This document shows, one piece after another, positions 1,807 through 49,454 of a stretch of DNA of 64,000 nucleotides; position 1 is the first letter of the stretch, and each line of letters begins with the position of its first letter. The DNA lies in assembly GCA_002269645.1 (NCBI GenBank), contig NIVC01000611.1:124001-188000 (forward strand), given 5' to 3'. Made by a program: the position numbers and the translations under genes. The stretch is from Macrostomum lignano. Taxonomy: Eukaryota. Below the pieces are notes generated by a model that was not told the DNA's origin, made no database searches, and was given only the letters and a program-made list of their open reading frames with translations.

Positions 1807-4800
1807 CAGGGAATCCTATTTGTTTCACCAGGAACCGACACTGGTCCCGCACCACCCCACCTCCCCTACAAGTTGAGGCCCAAGCCTTCGAGCCTTCGAG
1901 ACTCGGGAGTTTTTGTGAGTAAACCCTTCCTTGTAGGGAGGTTTTGTGGGGACGAAAAATAACAGAAGAGTAATTTTTAGTTGAGAGTTAGGGAGAATAA
2001 ATAACAGAATGGGCAGGAGATCCTCGCTGCGCTGCTGTGTATGTACGAGTTCGTGGAACAAAGAGCCTTTCCTGGGGGACGGAAGTGCATAGGAAAATTA
2101 ATGTGCGTTCTTTCCTCACACTGTACTCTACTGCACATTTACTGTTCTTTGCCCCTATATACGTTGCGAGTTTGTCTCGAAGAGCACTGACTCGCAATCT
2201 TCTCAATTCCACTCTATCGGATTTTGAAACTACCTGATCGTTCCCACTATGGGCTACAAGTGCTGCGTTCCTCTGTGCGTCACCAACTATGCTCGCTATG
2301 AGAAGAATCCATGCAACCGTGACTATCCACAAGTTTCCATCATCTACGCAGTTGGAGCTCCTGAATAAGTGGATCACGGCCATTCCACGCGTGTGGACCG
2401 ATTCCGAGTTGGAGCAGCTGAGAACAAACCCTAACCACAGCTACAGGGTCTGCTCGCTTCACTTCCCTGAGAAGTACTTCGTGATCAACTCTCGGGACTC
2501 CAATCCCCACCGCAAACGGACCGAAGCAGATGGTCAGCCTGCAGGCAAGCTAAAGCTTCGGCGTCTAGCCGCTGATGCCCTACCTTGCATCTTCCCAAAT
2601 GCACCCTCCTATCTGAACAAGACCATCACTGAGGAGCGCCCCACTCAGCTGGCATCGGCCGAGACCCGCCGGGAGAACGACACGAGGCGGTGCGAAGAAG
2701 AAGCGACAGACTTCTTGCAGAACGATGACATTGTGGACTTCCAGGCCATCGTGTCGTTCGAACTGCCTGACCATTTGTAATGCTTTCACAAGCAGACCTC
2801 TGTCTCAACTTTATGCTTTTTTGTCACTCGGATGTGTCTTGCTGAGACCCCTAAAATTGCAGTGTCATTGACGGTGAGTAACTCTGCATTTTACTGTCAC
2901 CATTGATGGAGCCGAGCATGGCCTATTTGCCCAAGACCTGGTCCCGGAAGGTAGGTTGCGCACCTTCTCTCAGCTGGAAAATATCCTTGCTAGACTGAAG
3001 AATCATCAACCGGAAGAGCGTGAGGGTGGCTTCGAACAGCATCTTCAGAGGGCTGAGGAAGAAGTCAAGAAGGCAATCCTTGAACTCTCTTCAAATATCG
3101 AAGTGATGAGCGACCAAGGAGAGGACACCTCTGCCGAGGAAGTTACCTATGCCAAGCTGAACTTCTTGCTCGAGCAGCTGAGCCTCGTCAGCAGCAGCGG
3201 GAAGAAGGTTGCCTACTCCCAGGAGTTGCTGGCCTTTGCCTACTTGCTGCAGCACCACAGTCCAGCTGCTTACAACTTTCTTCAGTCCTCCAACGCGGTG
3301 ACCCTTCCCAGTGTCCGGCACCTACAGCGCCTATCTTCTGGGTTCAGCAATGATCCGGACATCAAGTTCATGGAAGATTACCTGAGGCTGAAGGTCCAAA
3401 GCCTGCCGGATACTGAGAGGGTAGTGCTGCTAGCGATTGATGAAATTTACTCGTCAAGAAGGATGGAGTTCAGTGGAGGGCAGTTGACGCGGCAACAAAT
3501 GAGATGGCAAAGACGGTGTGCGCCTTCCTCACGAAGTCCCTGCATGGAGACTTCCAAGAGGTCATTTCCCTGGTCCCCAAAAGCCGCCTGAACGCCCAGG
3601 ATCTGCACAAGCACCTGATTGACTGCCTTACCCTGCTGCACAAGGTTGGCTTGAAGCTGGTTGTCTGTGTGGTGGACAACAATTCAGTGAACAGGAGCCT
3701 GTTTCAGGTTCATCTGTGCAAAGGTCAGATGCAGTCCTCCGTTCCCAATCCGGTGTCCGGTGAGCGTCTATTTCTCCTCTTTGATCCCGTGCACAACTTC
3801 AAGAACATCCTGAACAACTGGATTTCTCGTGAAGTGTTTCAGTTCCCTGACTTTTCGGATCCACAGAAGATCCAGACAGCGAATTTCCTAGAGTTGCACC
3901 GGCTGCATGACCTGGAGCTCGGCCAGCCTGCTCGGATTGCTCACAAGCTGAACAGGAGGTCCTTGAATCCGACAAACCTGGAGAAGTCAAACGTCCAGCA
4001 CGCTGCCAATGTTTTCAGCGAGTCCACAGTGGAGGCTGCCAAGTTCCACAGGTTTCCCATCGGTCTGATCACCTTCTTACAGCTCATTCTGAGTCTGTGG
4101 ACGATGTGGAATGTTAGGACCACGAAGAAGGCAAAGGAGAAGCGGCTTCCGGACGCTGCTCCGTTGGTTCCGAATGATCCAAGGCTCTCAAAGCTGCGCC
4201 AGTTTGCCACTTTTTTTCATCGATGGGAGGAGTCAAAGCTGCCTGGCTTGACTGCTCCTACATTCTTAGCCGTGAGATCCTGCTACCTCACTCTTGCTGA
4301 CCTCACAGAGCACCTGTTGGCCGAGCATTCGTTTCCTTCCGTTTTGACAGGCCGCATTGTCAGCGATTGGATTGAGCGCCGCTTCGGTCGCTACCGCCAA
4401 TTTCACGGTGGCAACTTCTTCATTTCCGTGCGTCAGATCTTTCAGGCGGAGAAGATCCGCATCTCGATCTTGCTCAAGTTTCATGGACTTAAGCTGAGGG
4501 ACTTTCAAATTCTTTATCAAGGAAATCCGTCTGACTTCTCAAGCCAACTGTTGTCTTTGTCGCTGCCTGGCCTGGAGCATCTGAGTGCTGCTCTTTCATC
4601 AATGATCTGAACCTGTGCTCCTATCTTGGTGGGTATGTCGCGAAGTCTCTGTGTGGTCAGCTGAAGTGCCAGGATTGCAGGAACTTCCTGGTCACTGCCG
4701 ACTATTTGGAGTTCCTATCCGATGATGAGGCCCGCGCTGAGGATTTCGCCTTGATCCAGATGCGTGATCGTGGTGGTCTGAAGTGCCCCAGTGACTTCGT

Positions 4801-5468: not shown

Positions 5469-6157
5469 CAAAATTTCTCTTTTTAAATTCCGGAGTATAT
5501 TATTGAGTTAAAAATGAACTCAAGCATTTGTTGTGCCCGGGTGCACTTGCACCGATGAGCAATCTCTGGCTCTCGGTCAAAGTGTGGCCGGCTCTGCACT
5601 CCCACCCCCCCGGCCGCGTGCCTGCGCCAAACCCCCCCCCATTCTGTCTGCGTCAACCCCCCTCCAGTTGCACCCACTGTTGTGTATTGCAAAGGCATGC
5701 AATGCGTAGGGATAGTTCGGGGACAGGGTTTCTAGAAACTTCCACAGCAGGACTTGTTTACGCATTGTTCCAGAAGTTTCCTCTCCCGGTCTTTCTAGAA
5801 CTTTCCTTCCCCGCGTGCATAAATATACTAGCCGCCCTCCTATTGGCCAAGCCCTCTTTTGGTGCCACTGAGCGCCCGGATAATTATCTATCTTGTTTCT
5901 GCGTTCGTTAATTCAACGACAGAACACCCACCCCACTGCCTGTTAGGACAGCTGGCTTTGGCTGGCTGCGGCCCCAGTGCGCCCCCTCGCTCACCCTGCG
6001 AGTGGCTGGTGGTCCAGACGGATAACTAAGCCAACAGCCCCACAGAATATTCTGTGACTGTGACTCAGCCTAGGGTGCCCAATCCAGCTCAGCCAATGAG
6101 AGAGCAGTAAGGAACGAGGTCAAAGTCAGACACAATCGGGTAAGAGAAAAAGCCTAA

Positions 6158-6317
6158 AGGCTCGTTCACACTGCCATCAAATACGAGTGTAAGGACAGAT
6201 TTCGTCTGATCACACAACTTATGCATCAAATTTCTTTGTACATCGGTGAGTCGTGTCTGGTCGTAGCGGTTGGTCGTGTGATTTGGTGGCTCATCCGATG
6301 GCAGTGTAAATGAGGCT
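6158..6317. mobile_element. Tourist-like (PIF/Harbinger) MITE, 160 bp
   Basis: 21-bp TIR AGGCTCGTTCACACTGCCATC / GATGGCAGTGTAAATGAGGCT (18/21). TAA on both flanks (6155-6157, 6318-6320). Confidence 0.8.
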
Positions 6318-6947
6318 TAACTATTTATCTGCATGGTTGTGGGCTGTGTCGCAACTCCTTTTCTCTCTTGTTCGCTGTGCACACGCACTGGATTAGGTTT
6401 TTTTCATGTTATTTTGCAATCCAGTCTAGTATGCATTTATTAAGGCCAAAAAAACGCTGATTTTGCTACTTGAAAAGAGTAGATAAGCGCATTTTTGCGA
6501 TTGCTATATCTACGAATTTGAGAACCGGCTTGTAAGGCGAGACAAGCGATGAGTCAAGTGTTTTCATAAAACTTCCTACATAAATGTACGAGCTACATGT
6601 ACATACGGGTTTTTTGCATTTTTTAGAACTTCAAATCGTAAAAATAAAAAACAGCAAGATAGCAAACGAGAGTCGAAAGAAGAGTCTGAAATTCTGAAGC
6701 CGTGCGAAGCATTGCTGGATAATTAACTATCTTGCCGGCGGGGCTCATAAAGAGAAGTTCTGCTTTCGCTTAACAAATATCCACTAATTATGGCGACTGC
6801 ATGGTGATAATTCGCTCGGACGGAATATGCTCAGCTTTCCTCAACTTTCTTGAGCCTAACTGAGACACAGACTCAAAATTGTAATTACTGGCTTTAAAAT
6901 AGCTTCAATTATACTGCTGGGTCCGTTTCTCAGCTGCATATCGAATG

Positions 6948-11441: not shown

Positions 11442-13128
11442 ATGTCGCTGGCCAGCTTCGAAGTGCCAATGTTCGACGAGCATGCGGCGTTCCGAGCGGC
11501 CAAGTGGATCCAGTGGGTCGGCAGCCCCATCCTGCTGCTGATTGGCTCGGTGGCCAACTCCCTGTCCGCCTGGATTCTGACCCGCCGGATTGACCAAAAT
11601 GGCACCCACAATTACCTGCTGGCGCTCAGTGCGGCTGATCAGGTGATGCGATTGGCTGCTCTTGGGGCTCACTTTAACCACCACCTCATTGCACCAACCA
11701 TCCCACACATCCGGTAACTACGCTCGTAACTGCACTCACCGCCCCACCACCTCACTGCACCCCACCACCTCATTATACCCACCACCTAATTATACCCACC
11801 ACCTCATTATACTCGCCACCTCACTGCACCCACTACCTCACTGCACCCACCACCTCACTACACCAACCACCTCATTATACCCACCACCTCACTGCACCCA
11901 CCACCTTGCTGCACCCACCACCTTGCTGCACCCACCACCTCCCTGCACCCACCACCTCACTGCACCCACCACCTCACTGCACCCACCACCTCACTACACC
12001 AACAACCTCATTATACCCACCACCTCACTGCACCCACCACCTTGCTGCACCCACCACCTCACTGCACCCACCACCTCACTGCACCCACCACCTTGCTGCA
12101 CCCACCACCTCATTGCACCCACCACCTTGCTGCACCCACCACCTTGCTGCACCCACCACCTCACTACACCCTACCACCTCACTGTACCCACCACCTCACC
12201 GCATCCAGCCGCTCCAATTTGATCAGTCGATTTCATTGCAAAACTCACCTTGGCTTTTTACCCTCCGGTTCCGCAGGTGACACTGATTAGCGGTCTGCTC
12301 AAGTCGTGGATTTCTGCCCTAATCGGCGACGACTGCGCCAAGCTTAGCATCGTGATCTGCATCGGCGGCAACTTCCTATCGACGTCGTCAACCTACCTGA
12401 GCGTCTATTTGATTGCCGCGGTTACCATCGAGCGGCTGTTCGTGCTGTACTCGCGGATGCCCGTGCTCAACACCGCGGTGGCTCGCGCTCGCCGGATCAT
12501 CCTCGGCCTCTTCATCGGGTGCTTGATCATCAACATCCACTGGTTCTTCGTGCTGGACATCTACTCGTTCCTGTGGCACCCGGACTCTAACCGGACTCAC
12601 ACCATCTGCTACCTGCGCCCGAGCCTGCTGGTTCATCTCAAGCAGCCCCTGGCCTGGCTGGACTTCCTGCTCTACTCTCTGATCCCAATCCTGCTCATCG
12701 TGGTGTGCAACGTCGTCATCATTTACCGGATCTACACCTCGCGCCGCAGGTACAATCGCGAGATGCAGGCGGCAACGGAGCTCCAGGACATGCAGTCCAG
12801 GGTCCGTCGCCTCGTGAGCAACAACAGCTTCAACAGGAGCGTCAACCAAGTCACCGTCATGCTGCTGCTGGTCTCGTGCTTTTTCATCGTGACCAGTCTG
12901 CCCATCACGGTGCTCAAAGTGCTCAGCTCGCTGTCCTCCGTGATCGACTCCACCGCCAACAACAACCGGGAATTCTACTCGCGCTACCAGCTGATCCAGG
13001 CCTGTGCCGAGCTGCTGATGTACCTCAACCACTCCAGCAATTTCTTCTTTTACTGTCTGGCCGCCAAGAAATTCCGCAACGATTTGTACAGCCGGCTTCG
13101 GAGCCTGCGGCACCACTGGCGCCAGTGA
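11442..13128 (+). CDS. Class A (rhodopsin-like) GPCR, peptide-receptor type; exons 11442-11642 and 12277-13128
   Basis: TM1 GSVANSL, TM2 LLALSAADQ|VTL, TM3 AAVTIERL, TM5 LYSLIPILLIVVCN, TM6 CFFIVTSLPI, TM7 LMYLNHSSNFFFY. Phase-0 GT-AG intron 11643-12276. An additional upstream exon is possible. Confidence 0.9.
11735..12200. repeat. 17-bp intronic minisatellite (CTCACTGCACCCACCAC and variants)
   Basis: Direct reading. Fills the GPCR intron. Confidence 0.9.
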
Positions 13129-17171: not shown

Positions 17172-20100
17172 TCACGCCAGTCTCGAGCTGCTGCCAGACA
17201 GATCTCCCAGCTCCAGCAGCGGGATGCCCAGCGCCAGGCGCATCTCCGCCCGCCTCTCCGCGGGAAAGTTGCTTGTGGACGAGCCCGGTCCAAAGGAGAC
17301 GGACTGCAGGCTGCTGGCCGTGCTGTTGCTGCTGAGCCACGAGGCGTCCAGCGCACCCGTGGATCTCGCCAACGGAATGTCGGCAAAGTTGGTCGGCTCG
17401 GCCGCTCCGCTGTCAGCGTCAGCTGGCTGGTCGGCTGAGCTGCTTGGATTGACACCGCTGGGGTGACCAGAGTTGCTGCCGTTGTGGCTGACGAAAGCAC
17501 CGTTGACTGCCCCGCTGGGTTGGGAGACCAGCTCTGCAATTTGTATTAGAAATTTGCATTGCGAATTACTTGTGACAGTTCACTCGACCGACAGAACCAA
17601 ACTGGTTAGTGGCAGGCAAGCTTTGTGATTTAACTGAATGAATGAAACATCTTGCTGCCCTGCAGATTTTAGTGCCTTCTCTAGCCTACAGCTCTTTGAT
17701 TTCGCCGCTACATCAAACCTACAACTCTTTGATGTCGCCGCTACAATAAGCCTACAACTCTTTGATGTCGCCGCTACATCAAACCTACAGTCTCTTGATG
17801 TCGCCGCTATAATAAGCCTACAGTCTCTTGATGTCGCCGCTACAGTAAACCTACAGTCTCTTGATGTCGCCGCTACCTATAAAAGATACCTCCAGCCCAG
17901 CAGATGCAGCTGGAGTCTCATAAATTGATATCATTAGCGAGGCTGCTGAAATTTAGAAAGCAAGTATTTGACAATTAGGCAGTTAGGCTCTTAGTCTTTA
18001 ATTGTGATTAAGCTCAAGCTCAAAATGAATCAACTTTTAACTTCGCATGCTTTGTCTGCTTATATAGAACTGAAGCCATCAGCTAGCTTTATTATAGCAA
18101 AATGGTTGCAATTAACGCTTGTGAACAGCTATACGTTCAGCTTCTTGTCCGGTAAACGAAGTAGCAGAAAAAACTGCTTGAAAGCAGAGCAAGCAAAAGC
18201 AATCAGAAAATTTTCTGCTTTTTGATGATTAAATCCGCGATGTTCAGGCAGATTAACTACTCCAGTTTTACCTGTGACAGGTCGGTCTAAAGCATTAAGG
18301 TGAGCTTTGGCTAATCCGCGAGTACTGCCAACTTCAGCAGGTGCCATGGCTGACAAAGATAGAACAGAACATTTCTATAAATACCTCTCGGATTAATGAG
18401 TTTCCAAGGCGAATTTATAAAACACCCTGCTTCACATCCAAAACTGAAAGTTCAACTCATTTCTGGCTTCCAAAAAACATCAAATAAAGTTTGTGCATTA
18501 CTTGCCAGATTGATAGATTGATGGGTTGATATATTGATGGGTTGATGGGTTGATAGATTGATGGGTTGATGGGTTGATAGATTGATGGGTTGATGGGTTG
18601 ATAGATTGATGGGTTGATGGGTTGATAGATTGATGGGTTGATGGGTTGATAGATTGATGGGTTGATGGGTTGATGGGTTGATGGGTCGATAGGTTGATAG
18701 ATTGATGGGTTGATGGGTTGATAGATTGATGGGTTGATGGGTTAATAGATTGATGGGTTGATGGGTTGATAGATTGATGGGTTGATGGGTTAATAGATTG
18801 ATGGGTTGATGGGTTGATAGATTGATGGGTTGATGGGTTAATAGATTGATGGGTTGATGGGTTGATAGATTGATGGGTTGATGGGTTGATAGATTGATGG
18901 GTTGATGGGTTAATAGATTGATGGGTTGATGGGTTGATAGATTGATGGGTTGATGGGTTAATAGATTGATGGGTTGATGGGTTGATAGATTGATGGGTTG
19001 ATGGGTTAATAGATTGATGGGTTGATGGGTTGATAGATTGATGGGTTGATGGGTTAATAGATTGATGGGTTGATGGGTTGATAGATTGATGGGTTGATGG
19101 GTTGATAGATTGATGGGTTGATGGGTTGATAGATTGATGGGTTGATGGGTTGATAGATTGATGGGTTGATGGGTTGATAGATTGATGGGTTGATGGGTTG
19201 ATGGGTTGATGGGTCGATAGGTTGATAGATTGATGGGTTGATGGGTTGATAGATTGATGGGTTGATGGGTTAATAGATTGATGGGTTGATGGGTTGATAG
19301 ATTGATGGGTTGATGGGTTAATAGATTCATGGGTTGATGGGTTGATAGATTGATGGGTTGATGGGTTAATAGATTGATGGGTTGATGGGTTGATAGATTG
19401 ATGTGTTGATGGGTTGATAGATTGATGGGTTGATGGGTTAATAGATTGATGGGTTGATGGGTTGATAGATTGATGGGTTGATGGGTTGATAGATTGATGG
19501 GTTGATGGGTTAATAGATTGATGGGTTGATGGGTTGATAGATTGATGGGTTGATGGGTTAATAGATTGATGGGTTGATGGGTTGATAGATTGATGGGTTG
19601 ATGGGTTAATAGATTGATGGGTTGATGGGTTGATAGATTGATGGGTTGATGAATTGATAGGTTGATAAGCTTATCAAGCCTTTGACTTTCAGTTCCACAG
19701 ATCGGCAAAGAAACTTCATGAAGAAAAATTTTTATACCAAAATTTTGAATGCACTTTACTACATGTAAATAGTTCTCAGCCTATGATAACATGTGGCTAG
19801 ATTATTATATGACCAAGCTCAATTTGATGCCAACTTAGAAAAATCCTTTTCGACACACGATTAGCAGTGTTCCGGCTTCAGTAGATTTTTTAACTCAAGT
19901 TGATAAAATCGCCTTTAGGTTGTACGACGTAAAACTACTCCTAAAATGGACTAGTCTACTCCTAAAATGGACTAGTCTACTCCTAAAATGGACTAGTCTA
20001 CTCCTAAAATGGACTAGTCTACTCCTAAAATGGACTAGTCTACTCCTAAAATGGACTAGTCTACTCCTAAAATGGACTAGTCTACTCCTAAAATGGACTA

Positions 20101-23100
20101 GACTACTCCTAAAATGGACTAGTCTACTCCTAAAATGGACTAGTCTACTCCTAAAATGGACTAGTCTACTCCTAAAATGGACTAGTCTACTCCTAAAATG
20201 GACTAGTCTACTCCTAAAATGGACTAGACTACTCCTAAAATGGACTAGTCTACTCCTAAAATGGACTAGTCTACTCCTAAAATGGACTAGACTACTCCTA
20301 AAATGGACTAGTCTACTCCTAAAATGGACTAGACTACTCCTAAAATGGACTAGACTACTCCTAAAATGGACTAGTCTACTCCTAAAATGGACTAGTCTAC
20401 TCCTAAAATGGACTAGACTACTCCTAAAATGGACTAGTCTACTCCTAAAATGGACTAGTCTACTCCTAAAATGGACTAGTCTACTCCTAAAATGGACTAG
20501 TCTACTCCTAAAATGGACTAGTCTACTCCTAAAATGGACTAGACTACTCCTAAAATGGACTAGTCTACTCCTAAAATGGACTAGTCTACTCCTAAAATGG
20601 ACTAGACTACTCCTAAAATGGACTAGTCTACTCCTAAAATGGACTAGTCTACTCCTAAAATGGACTAGTCTACTCCTAAAATGGACTAGACTACTCCTAA
20701 AATGGACTAGGCTACTCCTAAAATGGACTAGACTACTCCTAAAATGGACTAGGCTACTCCTAAAATCGTCCAAACTACATGTTTTTATAAAAAACTGAAA
20801 CCACCCTAGCCAGCCTCCAAGCCTCACCTTCGCCATCCGGGATCGTGGCCAGACCGCCGGCCGGAGCCGACACCAGCGGCGGCAGCTGCGGCAGCGGTCG
20901 CTGTTTTTTTCGCCGTTTTGCCGGCTTCCTCTCGTCAGCCGCGGCGGCATCTTCACCGCCGTCGACAGAGTCCTTGGCGGCCGAGGCGGCGGACTCGTCC
21001 TCCAGCGGGCGATAGGGAGTCGAGGCAAGCGGCAGCAGAGAGATCGGCGCCTGCGCGCAAATTTTTTTTCAGGAACAGCTGCTACTTTAGCTACTTATAG
21101 TAGAAAGTATTGGAAAATAAGCGGAAAGTAAAGTTTGGGGCAAAAACTATGCGGCACATTGAAAACTGCAAATTTGATGGCGCTGGCAAGAGAGAGAGCG
21201 AATATTTTGAGTGCAGCGCTGGCGCGGAACAGACTCCTGACCTGACCCTGATGTAAGCATCAAACGTTTAAAACTCTCACCTTCGGTTTTGCATCCGCAG
21301 CAAGGCTGTACTTCACATCCGGGGTCGTGGTCATCTCGTGATAGCCGCCCTGAATCACTGCTAGACAGCTCTGCTGCTGCTGCTCCTGCTGCTGCTTTCC
21401 CGGTGATTGCTCGTCCTCCCAGTGCACCGTGTGGGGCGTCGGGGCTACCGAGTTCTTGCGCTAAAGTTGGAGGCGTATTATTATTGAACTTTATGAGTGA
21501 ATCTGGCTCTGCAGTGAATCCCGTTTTCTTAGTTATCTTAACCTCACAGTTCTCACCCAACTACCCACCCCACCCGCACGCGAAGGCGTATTCAGCATGC
21601 CAGTGAAGTATGAGACAGACTAGGCCCATGGGCTAAGGTCTGCGATGCTTCACGCCTGCCCCTATCTTCAGCAGGTCAAGGCTGGTGGGAGGTCTGCACC
21701 CTCTATTTGCCTCTGGCAGCCGCAGACCCCCCCACGCTGTCTCGCAAGTCGACCCAGGGTACTCGTCCCCGCGTGTGTTCAAGGCAGTCCCTAGGGCTGC
21801 TGGACAGACTGGGCTCCGGCGCTGGCGACCCTATCCAGTGGCTTCGGCCGAATTTGGGTATGCGGGTCTGGCTCGCCAACCTGCAGGCCGTGGTACTGCT
21901 CAACGTACTCTCTAATGCCTAAGGTGTTGACCGTGCCGATGGGCTGGAAGGCCGGGGAGTAGTCCGGTCGCAAGCGGTCCCCCTCCTGGTGTCGGGCCAG
22001 CCTTGAGGGTGCTATTGGCCTACTGCCCGGTCAGGTGGAGCGGCCGGGTGGGTACCGCGCCCCTTTGAGGGTAGCCCACCAACCTTTTATCATGGCCTTC
22101 GAGCCGATTATGGATAACAAAGCTTTTTCTAGGGACGGGGACCCTTCTAAACCCCAACCTCAGTCCGAAGGACCGGCCGGCCCTGCTGGCAGATCCCAAC
22201 CGACTGATTCAACTGTGGCAAAGGAAGGACCGGCTGGCTCTGCTGGCAGATCCGACCAGAGCTACCAAACTCATAATACCCAAAGACCTGCCAGCTCCGC
22301 TGGTGGATCTAAGGGAACCGCGAGCTCTAGGCCTAAAGGACCGGCCAAATCTGGCAGATCCGATGAAGCTCAGCGGGCTCGGCTTGAGCGCAAACGCGCT
22401 AAACAACGCGCCAAAAGGCAGGCCAAGAAGGGAGCTGCGGGGGCCAAAGCGGCGGCGTCCACCATGGATGCTGAAGCGACTGGCGTCCCAAGGCAACCAG
22501 ACGGGCCGGCCGGTGGAAGCTCCGGTAGTTCAGCGGCGGCGCTCCCTGGAGATGCTGCTGCGGCTGCTGAGGCCGAAACCACGGCGCAACAAATGGCCAC
22601 TGCCAACAAGGAGGTTCCTTCGGGAGCTACCTTTGCGGCGAAGGCCAAGGCCAAAATCCCGGGAGTGATCATCCAAGGTCGCGACCAGGACTGGACCACT
22701 GATCAGCTTCAAAAAGTGTGGAGTGCTGTTGACTCCTATCTGATTGAGCTGACTGTCGAGGAGGGAATCTCCATCGGCATTGAGCGGATGGTGCTGCGAA
22801 GCACATTCGTTCTTATTGCTCCTAGCAGTGAGGAGGACGCTCGGCAGCTGCTCCAGCGGCTACCGACGGTCTCCTTGGATGCTGACCTTGGCGGAGCTCT
22901 TTTTCTTCGCGAGGGCCAGCGTCCAAAGACGATAACCTATGTGGTTTTCGTCCCTGCTAAGAGCACCGCAGCTGGACCAGACGTTATCCGCCGGGTCCTA
23001 CTGCGTCTGAACCCCGACCTCCCTGCTAGTGGACTGGTGTATCACCGTAAAGTCCGCAGGGGGGAGACGGGCAACTCAATTAACCTCGGCCTTTCCAGCA

Positions 23101-26100
23101 CTTGGGCGAGTCGGTACCCTAATGGATCCTCTTTCCAGCTGGGTGCCCTCAAGCTCAAGATGCGCCGAGGAAAGTCTGCCAAAGGGAAGGCTACTGCCAA
23201 CCCCGGCATCTCCGGCAAGAGCGGGGCGCAGTCTAAGGCCCAAGGAAAGGCGCAAGCCGATCCCAAAGCCAAAGCTGCATCTCGCCCCTCTGCTAGCAGC
23301 AGTTCGGCGACCGCGGTAACGGCTCCGGCCAAGCCCCGGGAACCAAACCTGCCAGTCGGAGAAGGAGTTGAGGACGAGGCCGGGTCTTCGGAATCCGAGC
23401 TCTCCTCGGCCACCCTGGTGGGGTCTGAAGGTAAAGATGCAGGTGAGGAAGCTTCCTCCATCCTGTCATCGGAGCCTGAGGACTCTGCTGGGGGGGCCGG
23501 TGGGGGTGAGGAGGCCATGGACGTCGACCAACTCCCATCTCCCAGTCAAGCCCCAGCGGCCTGGGACGAGGACGATCTGTTGTCCAAGTCTCCTTGATGG
23601 CCCTGGGCTCTAGCCAGAAATTGCATTTAATACAGTATGACTAAGCTCCACGCTGCCAAAGGAGCGACATTCTGTCTGCAAATTAATTTACAGCATTGCG
23701 TATCTGCGTCAGTAAATCTGATTAAGATTGCTGAGCTGTACAGGCCAGGCCTCATCCTGATCCAGGAACCCTGGATGCGCAACGGTAAGTTGCCCAACAT
23801 TCCCTCTGGCTACTCTGATTTGTATGTGTGTCTCTCTGATGGAGACCTTTGCGTCATCCAATCTAATCATTTCTCTCCGCGTACGTGTCTTGTTGCCTCG
23901 GTTTATATCCCAGGCGACAGAGACCCTGCTCCTGAGAGTTTACTGCGCCTCGCGCAGTACTGCGAGTCCCAGAACGCTGAGCTGTGCTTAGGGGGCGACC
24001 TCAACGCGCACCACAAGCACTGGGGCAGCAAAGATACCAACACTAGAGGAGAGGAGCTTCTGGCCCTCATCTCTAACACAAACCTCATGCTCTGCAACCG
24101 CGGCAGCACTCCTACCTTTAATAATGGCAGATGGACCGAGGTCCTGGACGCCACACTCGTTACCCCAAGACTCTTTGACAGAGTTGAGGAGTGGAGAGTC
24201 TGGTCTGAGGAGCCCTCCCTGTCTGACCACTGCTTTATCGCCTTTAACATCGCGGACACTAAACCCCAGTCTCCGATCACTTGGAGACGCAATATCCGCA
24301 ACACTGATTGGGCGGCCTACAAGGCTGCCCTTGATCTGCACCTGCAGGAACTCACGGACTTACGTCCGATTGAGACCTGCGAGGATGTGGATCATATAGC
24401 TGAGACGCTGACAGGTTGCATTATTGCAGCCTACGAAGCGGCTTGTCCTGCTCGCGCCTACAAAGGCAAGACCTCGGCGCCGTGGTGGAACCCGGAGCTG
24501 GGGAAACTCAGGTGGAAGGCCAAAAGCCTTCATCGCCGTGCCATGAAGACCGGAAACCCGGAGGACATGGAGCTTTTCCGGCAAGCCTCCCGCAATTTCA
24601 AATCTGAAGTGCGCAAGGCCAAGGAATGTAAGTGGCGCCAATTCTGCAATGAATTGGATCAAGACAGACCTACTTCTAGGCTTGTCAAGGCCCTTACAAT
24701 GGACAAAATGTCCAAATTAGCCATGATCAAAAAAGATGATGGCTCTCTTACTAAAGACCCTGAAGAAGTGCTTCAGCATATGCTTAGCACATTCTTCCCG
24801 AGGGTACCTACTGCTAGACCGGAGCCCAACCATTCGATGGATGGAGCCACCCTAGCGGCGGGCATTGTCATTGAAGACCTAATCGCTCGTGCGGTCAGAA
24901 CCTTCAAACCCTTCAAATCTCCTGGACCTGATGGTATCTACCCTGTTCTCCTTCGTGAAGCAGCCAAGATACCCTCGTTCCTGAGACTCACCCGCAATCT
25001 CATGCGGGCCTCTATCCAGCTGGGATACGTTCCCAAATGCTGGACTGAAGCTCGGGTAGTCTTTATTCCCAAACCTGGGAAGGGTGACTACCAAAGCGTC
25101 AAGGCCTTCCGGCCTATTAGCTTAACGTCAGCAATGCTTAAGCTCACTGAGAGGCTTATTCTCTGGCGGCTGCTGTCCTGCGAGCTGACAGCGATGCCCC
25201 TCAGCAATAATCAGCACGCCTTCCGTACCGGGAGGTCGACTGACAGCGCCCTGCATGCGATTGTCGAGAAGATTGAAAGGGCGGTACTGGGTGACGGTTA
25301 CGCTCTGGCTCTCTTTCTTGACATTGTTGGCGCCTTCGACAACGTTATCTTTGAAGCGTTTCAGAGGGCCCTTCAAAATCGCAAAGCTCATGCTACCCTC
25401 ATACGGTGGATCATGTACATGATCTCCAACCGTACGGTCACTGCCCAACTTCTTGGGCAAACTGCCTCCACCAGAGTCTGTAAGGGTGGACCCCAAGGCG
25501 GAGTCCTCACCCCGACGCTCTGGAACCTGGTCATGGACGCTCTTTTGAGTGACTCCCGACCCGACCCCGTCTTCAAAGTCGGGTATGCTGATGACGTCAC
25601 GGCCATTGTGGCAGGACCGTCTCCCAGCACGCTCAGGGATCTGATGCAGAGCTTTATCCGCAAAGCAGAATCCTGGGCCAATGACAATGGTCTGGAACTC
25701 TCTGAGCCCAAAACCGTTGCCATTATGTTTACCAGCAGACTACGCTGGAACATACGTCCTCTGCAGCTCTACGGCAGAGATATTGCCTTCGCGCACCAGA
25801 CCAGATGTCTCGGGGTCATACTTGACCACCGGCTCAACTGGTCCTTCCACGTGAAAGCAAAAGCCAAGCGTGCCTCAGCCATCCTGGCCCAGCTCCGACG
25901 AGCACTTGGCACTTCTTGGGGTCTGTCCCCAAAGCGGCTTTGGTGGATCTATACTTCCGTAGTTAGACCTGCCATTACGTACGCCTCTGTTGTCTGGGTT
26001 AGCGCTACCCAGGTCAAAAGCCATGCAGACCTGCTCAACACGATCCAGGGCAGAGCGTGTAGGCTCATCTGCAACGCCACCAGGTCCACGCCCTTTGCTG

Positions 26101-29100
26101 GCATGGGGGCCTTCCTTAATCTTTCGCCTCTTGACCTCTTCATCAGGGGTGAGGCGGCTAGAACGACGCGGCGTCTAATTGATGCCGGCGTCAAATTCAT
26201 TTACATGAGAGCACCTGCTAAGCGGAACCTTGTCCCGCATAGCGATCTGTGCCTCAACTTTCTCAACGAGTGTCAGGCCAATCGCGTCTTCACCGATGGC
26301 ATTGCCTCAACGCTCAACCTGAGACAGCGCTACTCCGTAGCTATCGACTCGCGCGATAACATCAATGACCAATGGAACCCTGGTGAGCTTCATTGCTACA
26401 CCGACGGTTCTAAGCAGTCAGCCAACACCGGTTTTGGTGTTGGAATCTTCCTGAACGGGAGGGTCATCGCAACCCACGCTCAGTACACTGGGGTCAACTC
26501 CAGTGTCTTCCAAAATGAAGTTCTGGCCATCAGCTCCTGCACTGCAGAGCTTCTCGCCACTGGCGTTACTGGTAAGAACATCATTTTCCATTCGGACAGC
26601 CAAGCTGCCTTGCACGCCATCAGTGGCTGCAGCACCAACTCTGCTACAGTCCTCGACTGTATCAAACTCCTCAACGTGTTGGGTTCCGCCAACAAAATTA
26701 CCCTTAAGTGGGTTCCGGGGCATGTGGGAATCCGAGGAAATGAGTTGGCTGACACCCTTGCAAAAGTTGGTGCCTCCGGCTCCTCTCTCGGCCCCGAACC
26801 TCTTGTCCCGATTCCTGGCTGTGTCATCGACTCGCGCATCAAAGCGTGGATCAGGACCCAGCACCGCTCGACTTGGGCGAACCGCACGAACTGCAGGCAA
26901 TCCAGAGGCGCTGTCCCTCAGCCCTCTCACCAGCTCCGGAAGCTCCTCTTGCGCCTCTCGCGCAGAGACATCCGGGCTGCCACCATGACCCTCTCTGGTC
27001 ACGGCTGCTTCTCCAGGCACCAGTACCTGCAGGGCAACGCCACCAACGCCACCTGTAGTTTCTGCAACTCAGGTGACGAAACCGCTGAGCATTTCGTCAG
27101 CATCTGTCCCGCCTTCACGCGGGCCAGACTCACTTACCTCGGGTCACACACATCTATTACTGAAGCGTGCAAACCCGAAAACTTTAATCAGCTCATGCGC
27201 TACCTTCGGGCCACCCGCAGGGCTGAACTCTCCTTTCCAGAGAGCACCATAGCTGCTGGTGACACTGGGGGACCTCCCTGGGCGGCGCCAACCCTCCGTC
27301 CATAGCGACGCGTCGGCCGTTCAGGGACTAGCGGAATGGGCGCCCGCGCCTTCCCGCTGTGTCCCCTCCGGGACAGCCCTGCAGCTAAGTCTAAGTCAAA
27401 CCCACCCCACCCAGGCACCCACCCCACTCCTCAGCCAGTCACCCACCCCACTCCTCAGCCAGTCACCCACCCCACTCCTCACCCAGTCACCCACCCCACT
27501 CCTCAGCCATTCACCCACCCCACTCCTCACCCAGTCACCCACCCCACTCCTCACCCAGTCACCCACCTCACTACTCAGCCAGTCACCCACCTCACTCCTC
27601 ACCCAGTCACCCACCCCACTCCTCAGCCAGTCACCCACCCCACTCCTCACCCAGTCACCCACCTCACTACTCAGCCAGTCACCCACCTCACTCCTCACCC
27701 AGTCACCCACCCCACTCCTCACCCAGTCACCCACCCCACTCCTCACCCAGTCACCCACCCCACTCCTCAGCCAGTCACCCACCCCATTCCTCACCCAGTC
27801 ACTCACCCCACTCCTCACCCAGTCACCCACCCCACTCCTCAGCCAGTCACACACCCCATTCCTCACCCAGTCACTCACCCCACTCCTCACCCAGTCACCC
27901 ACTCCTCCTACTGAAAATCCAATCATAAAGTACATCAGAAACCTTCTTTCTCAAGGCGGACTTCTCAATCTTGGGCAGGCGACCGGCCGGGGTGCTGGGA
28001 GTCGGCGAGTTCAGGATCTGGCTGGAGTAGTTTGACCCCGGAGGAGAAGGCATCAGACTTTCCTGGCGAGTCTGCGCTGGCTGCTGCCGCTGCAACGACA
28101 TGGAGCTCGGTGGGTCGGCCGACAGGCCGCCATTCGATTGTCGGCAGTCGCTCTCGGCGGCGCCATCGGGAACGCCGGCGTCGTGGTCGCTGCACTCCTC
28201 TTTGGTGCCCATGATGTAGTCGTAGGTGGACATGCCGCGCTTGTCTGGCGGTTGAACAGGGGTGATCAGGGTGCCGATTGACTAGCTACACATTTGATTG
28301 GTTCGAATACTTATTAAGAGATTGTCTAAAAATATTAATTACCACCCTAATGATGGGCGTCGATCATGAAGTGATAGCAGCAATTAAGAGTGACAGGCAG
28401 CTGTCGGAAGTGACAGGAAATGGTCAGGATGGACAGATAAACATTGAGAGTGACAGATAATAATCAGGAGTGACAGATGAGCAACTTGAGTGACATATAA
28501 GGATCGTGAGTGACAGATAAGGATAAGGAATGACAGATAAGGATCAGGAGTGACAGATAAGGATCTTGAGTGACAGATAAGGATCTTGAGTGACAGATAA
28601 GGATTGGGAGTGACAGATAAGGATCGTGAGTGACAGATAAGGATCTTGAGTGACAGATAAGGATCAGGAGTGACAGATAAGGATCGTGAGTGACAGATAA
28701 GGATCAGGAGTGACAGATAAGGATCGTGAGTGACTGATAAAGCTCTTGAGTGACAGATAAGGATTGGGAGTGACAGATAAGGATTGAGAGTGACAGATAA
28801 GGATCGTGAGTGACAGATAAGGATCAAGAGTGACAGATAAGGATTGGGAGTGACAGATAAGGATCGTGAGTGACAGATAAGGATCAGTGAAGATAGAGCT
28901 TATCCACAAGGGACTGATGCGAGCTAGCAGTCGATCCGCTCTTGTGAACACGAATCTCAAGCAAAAAAAACAGTTAATCCTTGCTTTTATAACGATGTGT
29001 GACGAGAAGTAGTCTTGATGATGTGCTGGAAAACTCATCAAGCTGATGGCATCTCCGCTACCCCCCTGAGCTTCTCTAGAGAAGGAGATGCGTGAATTCC

Positions 29101-32100
29101 GCGTTTTTTTGCTGACTGACTGCAACAAAGCCATAGTAATTATCGGGGGGGCTTCAAGGAGTTTAGAAACAACCTCACCCAGAGATGAAGTGCTAAGCAA
29201 TAGACAGTGGGATAAACTAAAAAACTAATTAAGATTCCATTCCATCGTATTGATCGGAGAGTGACAGTTAAACATCCGGAGTGACAGCTAATCATCCGGA
29301 GTGACAGTTAGTCATCTGGAGTGACAGTTAGTTATCTGGAGTGACAGCTAATCATCCGGAGTGACAGTTAGTCACCTGGAGTGACAGTTAAGGATCCGGA
29401 GTGACAGTTAAAAGTTCGGACTGACAGTTAATCATCTCGAGTGACACTTAATCATCTGGAGTGACAGTTAATGGTTTGGAGTGACAGTTAGTCATATGGA
29501 GTGACAGTTAGTCATATGGAGTGACAGTTAGTCATCCGGAGTGACAGTTAGTCATCTGGAGTGACAGTTAGTCATATGGAGTGACAGTTAGTCATATGGA
29601 GTGACAGTTAGTCATCCGGAGTGACAGTTAGTCATCTGGAGTGACAGTTAGTCATATGGAGTGACAGTTAGTCATATGGAGTGACAGTTAGTCATCCGGA
29701 GTGACAGTTAGTCATCTGGAGTGACAGTTAGTCATATGGAGTGACAGTTAGTCATATGGAGTGACAGTTAGTCATCCGGAGTGACAGTTAGTCATCTGGA
29801 GTGACAGTTAGTCATATGGAGTGACAGTTAGTCATATGGAGTGACAGTTAGTCATCCGGAGTGACAACTGATTATCAAGAGTACATCTGGCATTCAACAA
29901 GGGGTGCCATGCACTTAGCGATTAGAAGTGGCAGTTCAGACCCAGCCGCACTCACACAGGTACAGGTGAAAGTCGAGCAGCTGGCACAGCAGCACAATGC
30001 CCACTAGCGCCAGCACGCAGCTGAACAGGAGCACCAGCACGAATGCCAAGTCGCTGCAGCTGATGAACAGCACATGGAAGAGGCCGGTGCCCTGCAAGTT
30101 GCCAGCCGTGAGGATTGTTAAGGTGTCGTTGGCCCAGCGTGACGAGCTGCTCCAGTAGGCTGGGTGAGGGTGCAAAGTGGTGGGCGGGTTCTCTGTAGCA
30201 TGTCTGCATTGCTCAGATTATTGCACAAGCTTGTTTGCATGCCTTTTTGGTGAACTTTTTTGCGCAGTTCATTTTTTTGCGAATGTTAAGAAAAAAATCT
30301 CAAACATGTATAATGCTAATCAGCTGCACTGTGAGAACTGCAGACATGGTTTGGTGCGACAGACCGAAGAGTGGCTATAAGAGATAAAGGGAGAGATGGG
30401 TGAGATTGAGGGAGAGATGGGTGAGATTGAGGGAGAGATGGGTGGGATTGAGGGAGAGATGGGTGAGATTGAGGGAGAGATAGGGTGAGATTGAGGGAGA
30501 GATGGGTGAGATAGGGGAGATTGAGGGAGAGATGGGTGAGATGGAGGGAGAGATAGGTGAGATTGAGGGAGAGATGGGTGAGATGGAGGGAGAGATAGGT
30601 GAGATTGAGGGAGAGATAGGTGAGATAGAGAGACGGATGGGTAAGATTGAGAGAGAGATGAGTGAGATGGTGGGAGAGATAGGTAAGATGGAGGAACAAA
30701 TGAGATTGAGGGACAGGTGGGTGAGACATAGGTAGAGATGCAGCCCTGAGATGCAGCCGCAGACCCCACCTTCGTAGGGCTTCAGCACCCGTCCAGTTTC
30801 GCTGTCCAAGAAGTAGGCGATCACGGCGGCAATGGCGAGGCAGAGTATAATTATGAGGCCGACAGTCGCACTAATTAGAGTGGCGATAAACAGTCTGCAA
30901 TATTTCGTGTGCGAAACCATGAATCACTGATAAGACGAGTGGGCTCACTGCATAGCCAAAGATAACGACTTTGTACCTGTAATTTCGACTGCCAACACAG
31001 TTATTCAGCCATTTGCAGTGGTGATCGAAGTCTTGAATGCACTTGTTGCAGCTGCTGCAGTGCTTGGTCTCGTTGTTGGAACTGAAATATTGAATTCATA
31101 ACCATATTTAAAACTGCTCTATTGCTAGTTATGGAATACATGTAGAGTAGGAGGAAGAGATACAGTACAGGGTGTGAGATAAAGGGAGATATGGCCTATG
31201 GTGAGATAGAGGGATATATGGGTGAGACAGAGCGAGAGATATGTGAGATGGAGGGAGATATGGGTGAGACAGGAAGAGAGATGGGTGAGATAGAGGGAGA
31301 TATAGATGAAACAGGGAGAGATGGGTGAGACAGGGAGAGATGGGTGAGATAGAGGGAGATATGGGTGAGACAGAGGGATATGGGTGAGAAAGAGGGAGAG
31401 ATAGGTGAGTTAGAGGGAGATATGGGTGATACAGGGAGAGATGGGTGAGACAGGGAGAGATAGGTGAAATCGAGGGAGATATGGGTGAGAAAGAGGTAAA
31501 GTTAGATAAGATTGAGGGAGAGATGGGTGGGATAAAGGGAAATATGGGTGAGACATAAGGAGAGATGGATGAGGCAGAGGGAGATATAGGTGTGAAAAAA
31601 CTTACATTTTAATTTCGCAAAGATTGCAAAAATAGTTTTCTATCACGTGCTTGTGAATTGCTTTGTCGAGTTTGGGTACAGGTTTTATGCCTTCCTGTTT
31701 TTGCTTGAGTCGCAGATTGATGTCTGCTGGATCCAGTACAGTTGACAGCAGGTGGGCGGCCAGGTGCGCCACCACTGCCATGGACACAATCTGGTTTTGC
31801 CGCGGTTTCAATGCAGTTAAGGAAATTTATGCAGTTGATTAAATAACTTCAAAACTTTATCCTGTATTATGCTGTAAAACTGTAATAGTTAATTAGCTAT
31901 GTTGTTAAAACCTTACAATGGGATAAAATAAAACAGAAATGAAGTATTAAGCTATAATATAGATTTATAAAAACTTAAATAAAGAAATTTGTTTGTACCT
32001 TTAATATATAAACGCTATATATATCTGGTTAAATTCTGGCCTTTACTTTTTGTTAGTGTTACCCAACCTGAATGCTTGATTAAGAGGGTAAGGGATGATT

Positions 32101-32301: not shown

Positions 32302-33260
32302 AGATGTGTTGAATAATTGTCTTATCTTCTACAAACTAAAGCAATAATATTTAAAACCTAGCATAGCCGAATAAGCAGACTTCTTTGGCTTTATTTTCTA
32401 TGCTATATTTTATTTGCATGAGACGTAAGGTACCGAAGAAAAAATATTGTTGAAGTAAAAATTCTGAATTTGTCTAATGACTTAGTCTAATTAGTCTAAT
32501 GACTTTAGTCTAATGACTAAAACAAAACATAAACTTTTCGTAGACTAAAATGTATTTATACTCCTAATAAACAGATATTATATTACTTAAAATGTTTTTA
32601 CAATGCAAAATTTGTTTATTTCAACATTTTTTAAGATAACCCCTGTGTAGCGTTTGTTCATTTTTTAGTTTCGTGAAACTTAAACAATATTGCCTTCGTA
32701 TTCATTCAACGTTATTTTGTCGTCCACCGAACACCCAAATTGATATTAAATGCTTACTTCTCAGACAAATAGTTTGCATTTAAATAGTCTTATATCTGTT
32801 TAAATAGTTCATTAAACGCACCATAATTTCAGTCGAGTTAAGAAAATGAAGTCAAAATGGCAAAAAGCAAAATGTAGTTAATAAGTTGGCTTGCGAAAAT
32901 ATGGATTGCAGCACGAATAAGTCGTTTTTATGCGTTTTATATTGCGTTGCAAATAGTCTTACTAAAAATTATTCTTTTTATAAATATGCGAAATCGATAT
33001 AGTTTATCAAATAATTCATGATTTATGTCAATCGCATAAATTACTTAAATGGAACTACAAAACCCTGTTAGAAGTTCAATTGACAATTATAAAAATCTTT
33101 TTTATTCAATATATTTTGTCAAATGAGTTTTTAGCAAGAAAAAATTGTTGTTTTTTATGACTGTTTAATAGATAAAAGATTCATTTTTTGTTTTAAATTT
33201 GAAGAAAATATATCTTAGGCCTTAAGCATTCTGACCAACATATTTTCTTTGCTGGTAGCC
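32302..33260. promoter_or_regulatory. AT-rich divergent intergenic region (putative bidirectional promoter, ZDHHC / DnaJ)
   Basis: Head-to-head ATGs at 32301 (-) and 33261 (+). No specific elements identified. Confidence 0.4.
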
Positions 33261-36155
<2,895 letters not shown>

Positions 36156-41786: not shown

Positions 41787-42069
41787 GCACGGGCGTATTC
41801 AGCATGCCAGTGAAGTATGAGACAGACCAGGCCTATGGGCTAAGGTCTGCGATGCTCTACGCCTGCCCCTATCTTCAGCAGGTAAAGGCTGGTGGGAGGT
41901 CTGCACCCTCTATTTGCCGCTGGCAGCCGCAGACCCCCCCCCCATGCTGTCTCGCAAGCCGACCCAGGGGTACCCGTCCCCGCGTGTGTTCAAGGCAGAC
42001 CCTAGGGCTGCCGGACTGACTGGGCTCCGGCGCTGGGGACCCATCCAGTGGCTTTTGCCGAACATGGGT
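41787..42069 (+). ncRNA. Second copy of the predicted HDV-like ribozyme (P1 partly disrupted)
   Basis: ACCCA 41962-41966, G(G)GG, L3 TACCCGT, CCC, CGCGTGT, GT, CGAAC from C42059, TGGGT 42065-42069. The 5' strand reads GCACGGG (one mismatch). Confidence 0.55.
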
Positions 42070-47290: not shown

Positions 47291-49454
47291 CACCTACCTG
47301 CAGATAATGAAATTTTGTCTATGGTAGGAATATGCTTCGGCTTTCGGGATTTAATCACATACCGACCTCAAATCCATAGAATATCTTATACTTAACTGCC
47401 CGCTAATTTGCATGAAAGTAAGTTTAAAGCATTAAAGTCCTGCAAGCGGGCTTAAACGTAGTCTATGGCATTAAAAGGCAAGAATAAGTACCCAGCGGGC
47501 AAGAGGTCATGGTACAATAAGCATTTTGCAGACAATTGCAGCAGGCGGCTGCCGTGCGTTTCACCTAGATTCAACACGCTTAGGCTAACTATAATGTTTA
47601 TACGGAGGCTACTATTGAAATTTCAATGCTAGCATCAAATGAGGCACTCGATTTTATAGCGATTCGATTGGCAAAAGGCGACATGTAGTGTTCAAAACAG
47701 AAGTTGAACCTTTTTGCAGCGAAGACTTTCGAGGAAACAGTTTACCAAGTCGTGCTGGAACACTCGACACTTAAATTGAAAAGTTTTGGTTCATTCCTAA
47801 GACTAGGTAAACCGTTTGCAATAAGGACTGTCATGGTTGTGGAAGGTTTTCAGTGTGCACTCTTGACACAGTCAGAGAGCCACAGCCATGGCAGAAGGGC
47901 GCGTTATGCTAGCCGTAGTTGCCACGAGTTCAATACACAGAACTATTTATTCCAGGCTTCACAGACAAAGTTGGTTTGGAAAAGAATGAGCTAAAATCTG
48001 GGCTGCAGGACAGCTCCCCGCGGGTGACAGCAAATCCCAACTTTTAATGGTGCTTGCCTTCCTGCAGAAAAGCTTTGAAAAAAGTTTTACAGACACGCCA
48101 AGTCTGGATTAATGGGCCTTAAAAGCTAACAATTGGTCATGTTTGCAGGATGGCTGGCGCTGCTCTCGGCGGCATCGTCCTGAAACCAGTACTGAGCCAA
48201 TAGTGTACGCAGGCACAGCAGACCTGACTTTCTAATCGCTAGATTCAGGCGCGTTTACCGCCGAGCTCCCATTGGAAGGGGGCTGCATTTTCTGCTTCAG
48301 AGAGGCAAATTAGCTTCAACAACCCTATACAAGCCCCCTTAATTCATAGTAGAAGGCAAGGCAAAATGAAAGTCAAACATGCCAAGTGTTTGCCAATCCA
48401 TTATTACCGTGACAGTTACAAAAATACGTGACAGTTTCTTGTACAAGCCAGTTTTCATACCGGATCGAATCTTCAGCCAGTGAATTCCTACACCATCAGC
48501 AGCTCTTTGCCATGAAATTTTCACCCACTCTCGGCAAGGCTAACTAATTGGAGTGAGTCTGGAAGGCTTGTATCCGAGGGCAAGTCTCCTATCAGGCAGG
48601 AAGCCAGTCTACCTATAGGGCTGCGAGCCACAAGGGTGTCACCTATCCAGCTCTAAACAGGGCCAGGCCAAGGGGTCGGGAAGGGGCACCCAGGGCAAGA
48701 GGACCCGGACTCAGCCGGTATCCCCGGTACGAGACGAACTTCCAACCCAGGACTCCATTCCACTGTCAGGATGAGAGCCGGAGACACAAAGGCAGGGAAC
48801 TTCCAGAGGAGCCAGCAGATGGACCAAGGCTATGGAGCACGCTCACTGAGGCGAGATCGATAAACTCCAACTATGTTCAGTCTTAGCGGTTTTTTCTGTT
48901 TAAAACTGCATGAATGCTCTCAACTTGCCTAAACTAATCATTCTTAACTATTTTGCTAACCGAAAACTACTAATAGTAGTGTGATTGTACTATAAACGAC
49001 CTACGATAGAATGAAAAGCTGATCTGTATCTCACCTGCTGCAAATATCATCGAACAACTGCCCGGCCGGCCGTTACTCGTAATTTTCTTGTTTTCAGATT
49101 TCATTTAAGGCACATTTGAACTTGTCAAGCTTTTTAACAAAAAATATCAAACAATACATGTAATGATATTTATTTAAGTTATTTAAGTTTAATAAACTCA
49201 AACGCTAAACAAATCAACGATTAACGAACAATAAAACAAGGAAACAAAAGTTGACTATTTGCTGAAATGAATGGTGATGTCATGTAGAATTTTTTTGTGC
49301 TAAATTGGAGACTGCAAATATTTTGATATAAATTTTGTCTAAGGAGCCAAGTAGGAGCAAATTCTGACTATTCAAAAGACGAATTGATAAGAGGACTGTG
49401 GAAGAGTGACTGGACGAGAGTTCCATCATAGAGTGGCTTAAAGAGAATGAATGG

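Follow-up and report, generated by a model that had tools for sequence, protein, structure and literature searches.

The 5′ untranslated region (UTR) of a long interspersed nuclear element (LINE) of the macrostomid flatworm Macrostomum lignano probably encodes a self-cleaving ribozyme of the hepatitis delta virus (HDV) type that comprises about 238 nucleotides (nt; 21576-21813) and would process the element's 5′ end in a way already known from other LINEs. The element, a full-length retrotransposon without long terminal repeats, occupies positions 21576-27399 of the forward strand of a 64,000-nt stretch of DNA (GenBank assembly GCA_002269645.1, contig NIVC01000611.1, positions 124,001 to 188,000), which we refer to as the window, and both of its open reading frames (ORFs), ORF1 and ORF2, are open. 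An earlier note on this DNA had proposed that a nested double pseudoknot of the HDV type heads the element. We find this proposal plausible, and the paired regions P1, P1.1 and P2 covary in a distant relative, but the 3′ half of the ribozyme probably needs to be redrawn.

The 5′ terminus of the element

The element is bordered by a 13-base-pair (bp) target-site duplication, ACCCACCCCACCC, of which the window holds just two occurrences, at 21563-75 and 27400-12. Because this duplication is confined to the two junctions and ends at position 21575, G21576 is the first base of the element; the cleavage site predicted in the earlier note, with a C at position -1, coincides with this base. A second, degenerate copy of the element, 91% identical to the first, was found by a BLAST comparison of the element with the window at 41787-47292; nothing of the element follows position 47292, so that its 3′ part is gone, and its ORF2 is broken into two pieces (43897-45237 and 45436-46224). 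This copy begins, after an unrelated flank that ends in GGGCTC, with GCACGGGCG, and its first five bases (GCACG) are those of copy 1.

The search with the ORF2 protein yielded one usable relative, L001 (a Logan contig of 6,492 nt, run ERR14788467), which is also the one relative found that possesses a 5′ UTR; this region is absent from the contigs of P0004, L002, L003, L050 and L051. The search with the ORF1 protein recovered three chimeric M. lignano UniRef entries only, and neither a protein search with a two-sequence ORF1 domain profile nor a comparison of an ORF1 profile with viral contigs gave a match. The proteins of L001 and copy 1 are 56% (ORF2) and 38% (ORF1) identical. L001 opens with GCCTGC, at the G that is homologous to G21576. 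Since the 5′ UTRs of the two elements align end to end (55% identity), and a block of 88% identity (nt 33-73) lies at the same offset in both, their 5′ ends are co-terminal. Hence, the target-site duplication, the GCACG start of copy 2 and the homologous G at the start of L001 all agree on the terminus. It should be noted that the L001 contig starts exactly at the first base of the element and yet runs about 530 nt beyond its 3′ end into the flank (5958-6492), an asymmetry that would fit an RNA-derived contig beginning at a processed 5′ end.

Architecture of the predicted ribozyme core

The strands of the double pseudoknot follow each other in the order P1-J1/2-P2-P3-L3-P3′-P1′-P1.1-P4-J4/2-P2′ (P, paired; J, joining; L, loop) in copy 1, in copy 2 (with one mismatch in P1) and in L001. 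All strands named in the earlier note, namely P1, ACCCA (21752-56), P3, L3, P1.1, CGAAT (21849-53) and TGGGT (21855-59), can be read directly in copy 1, and so can the hairpin GCAGTCCCTAGGGCTGC (21784-21800) and a helix of 10 pairs in 11 (21687-97 / 21722-32) that forms part of the branched stem 21680-21738 within J1/2. A G at position +1 opens a P1 of 6-7 bp both in copy 1 (G21576·U21776; 7 bp) and in L001 (G1-C194; 6 bp). All three sequences have a short G-C-rich P3, a 2-bp P1.1 and a loop L3 of about 7 nt in which U and G are conserved. The loop reads UACUCGU (copy 1), UACCCGU (copy 2) or UCUCCGU (L001); its U at position 1 and the CG at positions 5-6 are kept throughout, while positions 2-3 provide one strand of P1.1. 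When P1 and P3 alone are enforced in a constrained fold, P4 (21779-21804) arises unaided, and because the pair U21779-A21804 closes this hairpin beside P1.1, J1/4 has a length of 0 nt. The coordinates of these features, together with those of the remainder of the element, are compiled in Table 1.

In copy 2, a 4-nt deletion lies at the border of P1 and J1/2, and P1 keeps one mismatch. The extra G41967 of this copy can pair with C42020, which would give a 5-bp P2 and a 4-nt J4/2 (CUGA). Forcing the ribozyme fold on copy 2 costs 10.9 kcal/mol relative to its minimum free energy (MFE) structure.

Table 1. Features of the element, of its predicted ribozyme and of the related copies (positions in the window; L001, distant relative)
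Feature	Position	Strand	Remarks
5′ target-site duplication, 13 bp	21563..21575	.	ACCCACCCCACCC; identical to 27400-12; C21575 is position -1
P1, 5′ strand GCACGCG	21576..21582	+	cleavage is predicted to leave G21576 as first base; 7 bp with 21770-76, G·U first
J1/2, about 170 nt, structured	21583..21752	+	hairpins 21585-21601, 21603-21653 (conserved) and 21654-21676; branched stem 21680-21738 (constrained fold)
P2, 5′ strand CCCA	21753..21756	+	ACCCA 21752-56 in the earlier note; pairs with 21810-13 (4 bp) or 21855-59 (5 bp)
P3 and L3	21757..21769	+	GGG 21757-59 / CCC 21767-69 around the 7-nt L3 UACUCGU 21760-66; P3 invariant in copy 2 and L001
P1, 3′ strand CGCGTGT	21770..21776	+	a single further complement of the P1 7-mer in the rest of the element
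P1.1, 3′ strand GU	21777..21778	+	C21762-G21777 and A21761-U21778; both pairs changed on both sides in L001, still paired
P4, compact model	21779..21804	+	interrupted hairpin of 10 bp; closing pairs U21779-A21804 and C21780-G21803
J4/2 CAGAC, compact model	21805..21809	+	C21805 is the proposed catalytic C (C-N-R-A pattern; descriptor match)
P2, 3′ strand UGGG, compact model	21810..21813	+	homologous L001 segment pairs with the P3-adjacent strand
Downstream stem and mini-hairpin	21828..21859	+	ACCC/GGGU (21828-31 / 21856-59) and GGC-UUCG-GCC (21840-49); holds C21849, CGAAU and the distal UGGGU
ORF1	22092..23597	+	501 amino acids from the first ATG; 38% identical to L001 ORF1 over 179 amino acids
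ORF2	23637..27305	+	1222 amino acids; apurinic-type endonuclease, reverse transcriptase, RNase H (Pfam)
3′ UTR	27306..27399	+	ends ...GCTAAGTCTAAGTCAA, without poly(A); L001 ends ...GCTAAGTCAA
3′ target-site duplication	27400..27412	.	at the start of the 24-nt minisatellite 27401-27902
Homologous ribozyme region, copy 2	41787..42024	+	P1 6/7 pairs (G×G at position 6); extra G between P2 and P3
P1, copy 1 to L001			G·U to G-C; A-U to C-G; C-G to U-A; seventh pair lost; other three as in copy 1
P3, copy 1 to L001			invariant
P1.1, copy 1 to L001			A-U to C-G; C-G to U-A

Covariation in the relative L001

Pairs were counted by scoring a hand-mapped homology table in Python, as MAFFT misaligned L001 when applied to the trimmed core sequences. 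Fifteen of the 16 mapped core pairs are formed in L001, compared with 4-7 after displacement of the 3′ partners by 1-3 nt. Seven pairs have changed, of which six are still paired, five of them via changes on both sides; the binomial probability is 0.013 if a rate of 0.375 is taken for pairing by chance. In P2, the P3-adjacent strand CCCA has become CUCAGA (170-175), which forms 6 bp with UCUGAG (232-237), the segment homologous to UGGG 21810-13; one double change is involved, and an inserted GA contributes two extra pairs. The position of P4 is taken in L001 by an unrelated sequence that again folds into a hairpin, of 9-11 bp (197/198-227/228). In this comparison, most of the changed pairs of P1, P1.1 and the proximal P2 are compensated, and P3 is invariant; the distal P2′ drawn in the earlier note forms one of five pairs. 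The support provided by covariation is real but thin, coming as it does from a single distant sequence.

Closure of the 3′ half of the predicted ribozyme

Two candidate modules can close the pseudoknot at its 3′ side. The proximal module (CAGAC-UGGG) and the distal module (CGAAUU-UGGGU) each fit the pattern C-N-R-A followed by UGGG in both M. lignano copies; the J4/2 candidates are C21805-AGA-C and C21849-GAA-UU in copy 1, CUGA and CGAACA in copy 2, and, for the proximal module of L001, CUGC, which has no A. The earlier note had chosen the distal module, with a P4 of about 70 nt (21779-21848), a J4/2 CGAAU containing C21849 as the putative catalytic residue, and a P2′ UGGGU (21855-59) paired with ACCCA (21752-56). 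In copy 1, this arrangement has a P2 of 5 bp and a J4/2 with the textbook C-G-A-A; both are kept in copy 2 (CGAACA-UGGGU, with its two substitutions at linker positions), and the sequence of the block is conserved in L001 (CUAAAC-CGGGU). As an account of the ribozyme it is nonetheless unlikely. The L001 strand CUCAGA pairs with the distal P2′ at one of five positions; in the register set by homology it does so at three of five, with P2 and P3 then separated by three unpaired nucleotides. The distal GGGU has remained unchanged in L001 though the 5′ strand of P2 has changed, and a conserved ACCC (21828-31; 252-55 in L001) offers it a local pairing partner. Furthermore, C21849 is the closing base of the mini-hairpin GGC-UUCG-GCC, and no helix of the proposed 70-nt P4 closes beside P1.1 and C21849.

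We therefore favor a compact ribozyme that ends at position 21813, with a predicted P4 at 21779-21804, C21805 as the putative catalytic cytosine and P2′ at 21810-13; C21805 is preferred because the comparison with L001 backs the proximal P2′ and the distal segment fares worse. The ACCC...GGGU stem situated just downstream of the compact ribozyme is kept in L001 (252-55 / 277-80), where the hairpin reads GC-UUAG-GC, and the loop of the corresponding mini-hairpin in copy 2 is UUUU. This stem is conserved by sequence, with no covariation.

A conserved hairpin within J1/2

The hairpin 21603-21653 (28-78 in L001) is the best-conserved stretch of the whole element, exceeding in this respect both the ribozyme core and the encoded proteins, and RNAalifold recovers it, with compensatory changes, in each of the three sequences. 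Its role could be that of a pinch domain, of an internal promoter or of a site where proteins bind. Pattern matches to the J1/2 block GGGCTAAGGTCTNCGATG were obtained from metagenomes (25) and prokaryote genomes (20) but not from viral sequences (0); none of these 45 is similar to the UTR beyond the block, and they were treated as chance hits.

Internal promoters are used by many LINEs. One may accordingly ask if the 5′ UTR is merely a conserved structured leader, serving as an internal promoter or as a site for an element protein, that is closed via P1 pairing and does not cleave itself, the common terminus then reflecting precise initiation of transcription. That conservation within the UTR peaks in a J1/2 hairpin instead of the catalytic core would suit such a leader, as would the non-canonical J4/2 of L001 and the lack of an Rfam match; moreover, L1Tc holds a promoter and a ribozyme in one 5′ segment (PMC3185411). 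We consider this explanation improbable, since it leaves three properties of the region unexplained: the 2-bp P1.1 that connects the nucleotides right after P1 to an HDV-type L3, the covariation of the P3-adjacent strand with the segment that follows the P4 hairpin, and the C-N-R-A pattern that precedes this segment in copy 1 as well as copy 2.

The most unusual features of the region are this J1/2 hairpin, which is better conserved than the proteins, and the duplicate candidate closing modules. It is conceivable, but in our view doubtful, that the RNA switches between the compact and the extended closing module and that, alternatively or additionally, the hairpin 21603-53 has a second function, such as promoting transcription from within or binding a protein, comparable to the Pr77 segment of L1Tc.

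Chance expectation, model searches and opposing evidence

To judge how readily such a motif arises by chance, a relaxed HDV descriptor was used: a P1 of 6-7 bp starting with G; a P3 of 3 bp; an L3 of 6-8 nt that begins with U and has G as its last base but one; a P1.1 of 2 bp; a P2 of at least 4 bp with C-N-R-A within 2 nt before it; a J1/2 of up to 400 nt; and a P4 of up to 250 nt. Without an anchor, it identified 11 distinct cores on both strands of the window (128 kb), and the motif alone is thus weak evidence. One of the 10 other matches, at 4381-4750, has a 7-bp P1, a 9-bp P2 and a J4/2 CUGA; it spans the end of an ORF (3504-4610), lies at no boundary of an element or repeat, and was taken as a chance match. 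When the 5′ UTR was shuffled 20,000 times with its dinucleotides preserved, the descriptor anchored at the first base of the element found the core in 39 shuffles and the full motif in 15. That a GC-rich UTR meets by accident a loose descriptor, whose generous limits on J1/2 and P4 allow many combinations, is a very remote explanation of the motif; it is already disfavored by the anchored frequency, by the pairing independently kept in L001, and by the co-terminal 5′ ends of three sequences.

When P1 and P3 are forced and the pseudoknot strands are left free, the cost relative to the MFE is 3.4 kcal/mol for copy 1 and 5.7 kcal/mol for L001, and the unconstrained MFE structure of L001 includes P1.

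Several observations weigh against the presence of a functional ribozyme. P1 is absent from the unconstrained MFE structure of copy 1, for which the z-score is a mere -1.1. The P2 of this copy comprises just 4 bp, and its J4/2 is one nucleotide too long. In L001, J4/2 reads CUGC, or UGC if G197 pairs with C228, so that the expected A is missing; this A is constrained in R2 ribozymes (PMC3774820) and touches P3 in the C. briggsae structure (PMC13635239). The Rfam HDV family gave no match, either in a gathering-threshold scan of the window or at E≤10 on 21400-22000, on 21745-21865 and on nt 1-330 of L001; a missing match is expected with a J1/2 of 170 nt and with pseudoknots, which those models score poorly, but it is still a failed test. 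Only one relative is informative, as copy 2 is both closely similar to copy 1 and degenerate. In addition, the start of L001 may reflect an assembly break at the edge of a repeat and not an RNA end. Finally, three relatives with DUF4780 (L049, L052, L053; about 35% identity) carry no HDV-like core upstream of ORF1 and show no similarity in the UTR.

Proposed mechanism and its significance

In the mechanism that we envision, the element would be transcribed within a longer RNA, in which the ribozyme fold forms. With C21805 acting as the catalytic cytosine, together with Mg2+, the chain would be cut on the 5′ side of G21576; the host RNA upstream of the cut would depart bearing a 2′,3′-cyclic phosphate, and the element RNA would retain a 5′-OH at its exact first base, irrespective of the sequence that lies upstream. 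Reverse transcription of the trimmed RNA would then produce full-length copies that share the same starting G. The complementary strands, their position at the boundary of the element, the covariation with one distant relative and the shared 5′ ends are observed; co-transcription, the cleavage event and the identity of the catalytic cytosine are inferred.

If this mechanism operates, LINE 5′ ends set by ribozymes extend to a macrostomid flatworm and to its family of RNase H-bearing elements. As the element is apparently intact and resides in a transgenic model animal, the 5′-end processing of a LINE becomes testable there. Moreover, real candidates would escape descriptors that demand C-C in L3 and a short J1/2. 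The general view of what HDV-like ribozymes are or do would remain unchanged.

The element and its genomic setting

ORF2 matches the Pfam families Exo_endo_phos_2, RVT_1 and RNase_H, and a layout of two ORFs with the order apurinic endonuclease (APE)-reverse transcriptase (RT)-RNase H is in keeping with the LOA clade. The same order is also common to the I, Tad1, Ingi and Nimb clades and is therefore not diagnostic of LOA; with its LOA label drawn from domain order, the element is best regarded as a candidate member of this clade. No Pfam domain was found in ORF1. Among the proteins recovered with ORF2, the best full-length relatives are 55-56% identical, and the nearest named matches are uncharacterized insect proteins with 35% identity; relatives at 35% identity carry DUF4780, a domain that Pfam did not find in this ORF1. 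For fragments of the ORF1 and ORF2 proteins, the best-named database entries are from M. lignano itself.

Copy 1 (27385-27399) and L001 (5941-5957) both terminate in GCTAAGTC(TAAGTC)AA and are devoid of a poly(A) tail, which suggests that the shared terminus is a short 3′ repeat or a specific 3′ end recognized by the reverse transcriptase. The element is inserted about one unit into a 24-nt minisatellite (27401-27902), and one array-like unit is also found upstream of the 5′ junction. We considered this array as a possible tail of the element and rejected the idea; because L001 ends at the same ...TAAGTCAA without an array, and an array-like unit precedes the 5′ junction, the array is the target of the insertion.

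Altogether six minisatellite arrays with units of 20-24 nt are found within 14 kb around the element (18507-19666, 19935-20766, 27401-27902, 28432-28890, 29259-29866, 30381-31597); they produce long artefactual ORFs and strong swings of the GC skew in the composition profile. Other coding pieces of the window are a transposase-like ORF with a TNP-like RNase H domain (3504-4610), an exon of a rhodopsin-family G protein-coupled receptor (12250-13128) and an ORF with a DnaJ domain (33249-34157).

Comparison with known HDV-like ribozymes

HDV-like ribozymes cleave at the 5′ ends of the elements R4, Dong, baggins and L1Tc (PMC3774820), and a literature search found no paper on ribozymes in Macrostomum. 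The earlier note regarded the ribozyme as non-canonical and possibly as a member of an undescribed variant family, a view to which we do not subscribe, since an A-U pair in P1.1 and a long J1/2 are already documented (PMC13635239, PMC3774820). R2 ribozymes possess a J1/2 of 216-498 nt, a P1 of 6-7 bp, a P2 with mismatches and a P4 that is variable or absent (PMC3774820), structured J1/2 domains activate or accelerate large HDV-like ribozymes (PMC4908430), and fast HDV-like ribozymes with solved structures have a P1.1 that consists of U:A plus C:U or U:U (PMC13635239). Because a long structured J1/2 and an A-U pair in P1.1 are thus known from active ribozymes, the supposedly non-canonical features lie within known variation.

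The closest parallels are the 5′-end ribozymes of other LINEs (PMC3774820, PMC3185411), with which the M. lignano candidate shares a sense-strand location right where the element begins, a cleavage G that is base 1, a long structured J1/2, a P1 of 6-7 bp, a variable P4 and the presumed release from a co-transcript. It differs from them in belonging to a macrostomid flatworm LINE, in having no sequence similarity to them, and in its P1.1 of A-U/C-G (C-G/U-A in L001) and the 5-nt J4/2 of copy 1. Large ribozymes of the drz-Agam-2 type, which contain a 'P1.2 pinch', offer a model for the J1/2 helical domain, which could likewise join the outer ends of P1 and P2 (PMC4908430); in the M. lignano element this segment is a multi-hairpin structure of about 170 nt, one hairpin of which is more conserved in sequence than the core.

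With the C. briggsae, Ackermannviridae and CPEB3 ribozymes, the candidate has in common a double-pseudoknot core whose P1.1 does not consist of two G-C pairs (PMC13635239). Those ribozymes are compact, have a short J1/2 and are not located at transposon ends, whereas in the M. lignano sequence both P1.1 pairs are of the Watson-Crick type. Finally, the Pr77 segment of L1Tc, which combines a promoter and an HDV-like ribozyme in its first 77 nt, resembles the M. lignano element as a LINE 5′ segment that joins definition of the end by a ribozyme with strong conservation (PMC3185411, PMC4035085); here, the conserved block lies inside J1/2 and does not cover the whole ribozyme, and a promoter activity is known from L1Tc but not from the M. 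lignano element.

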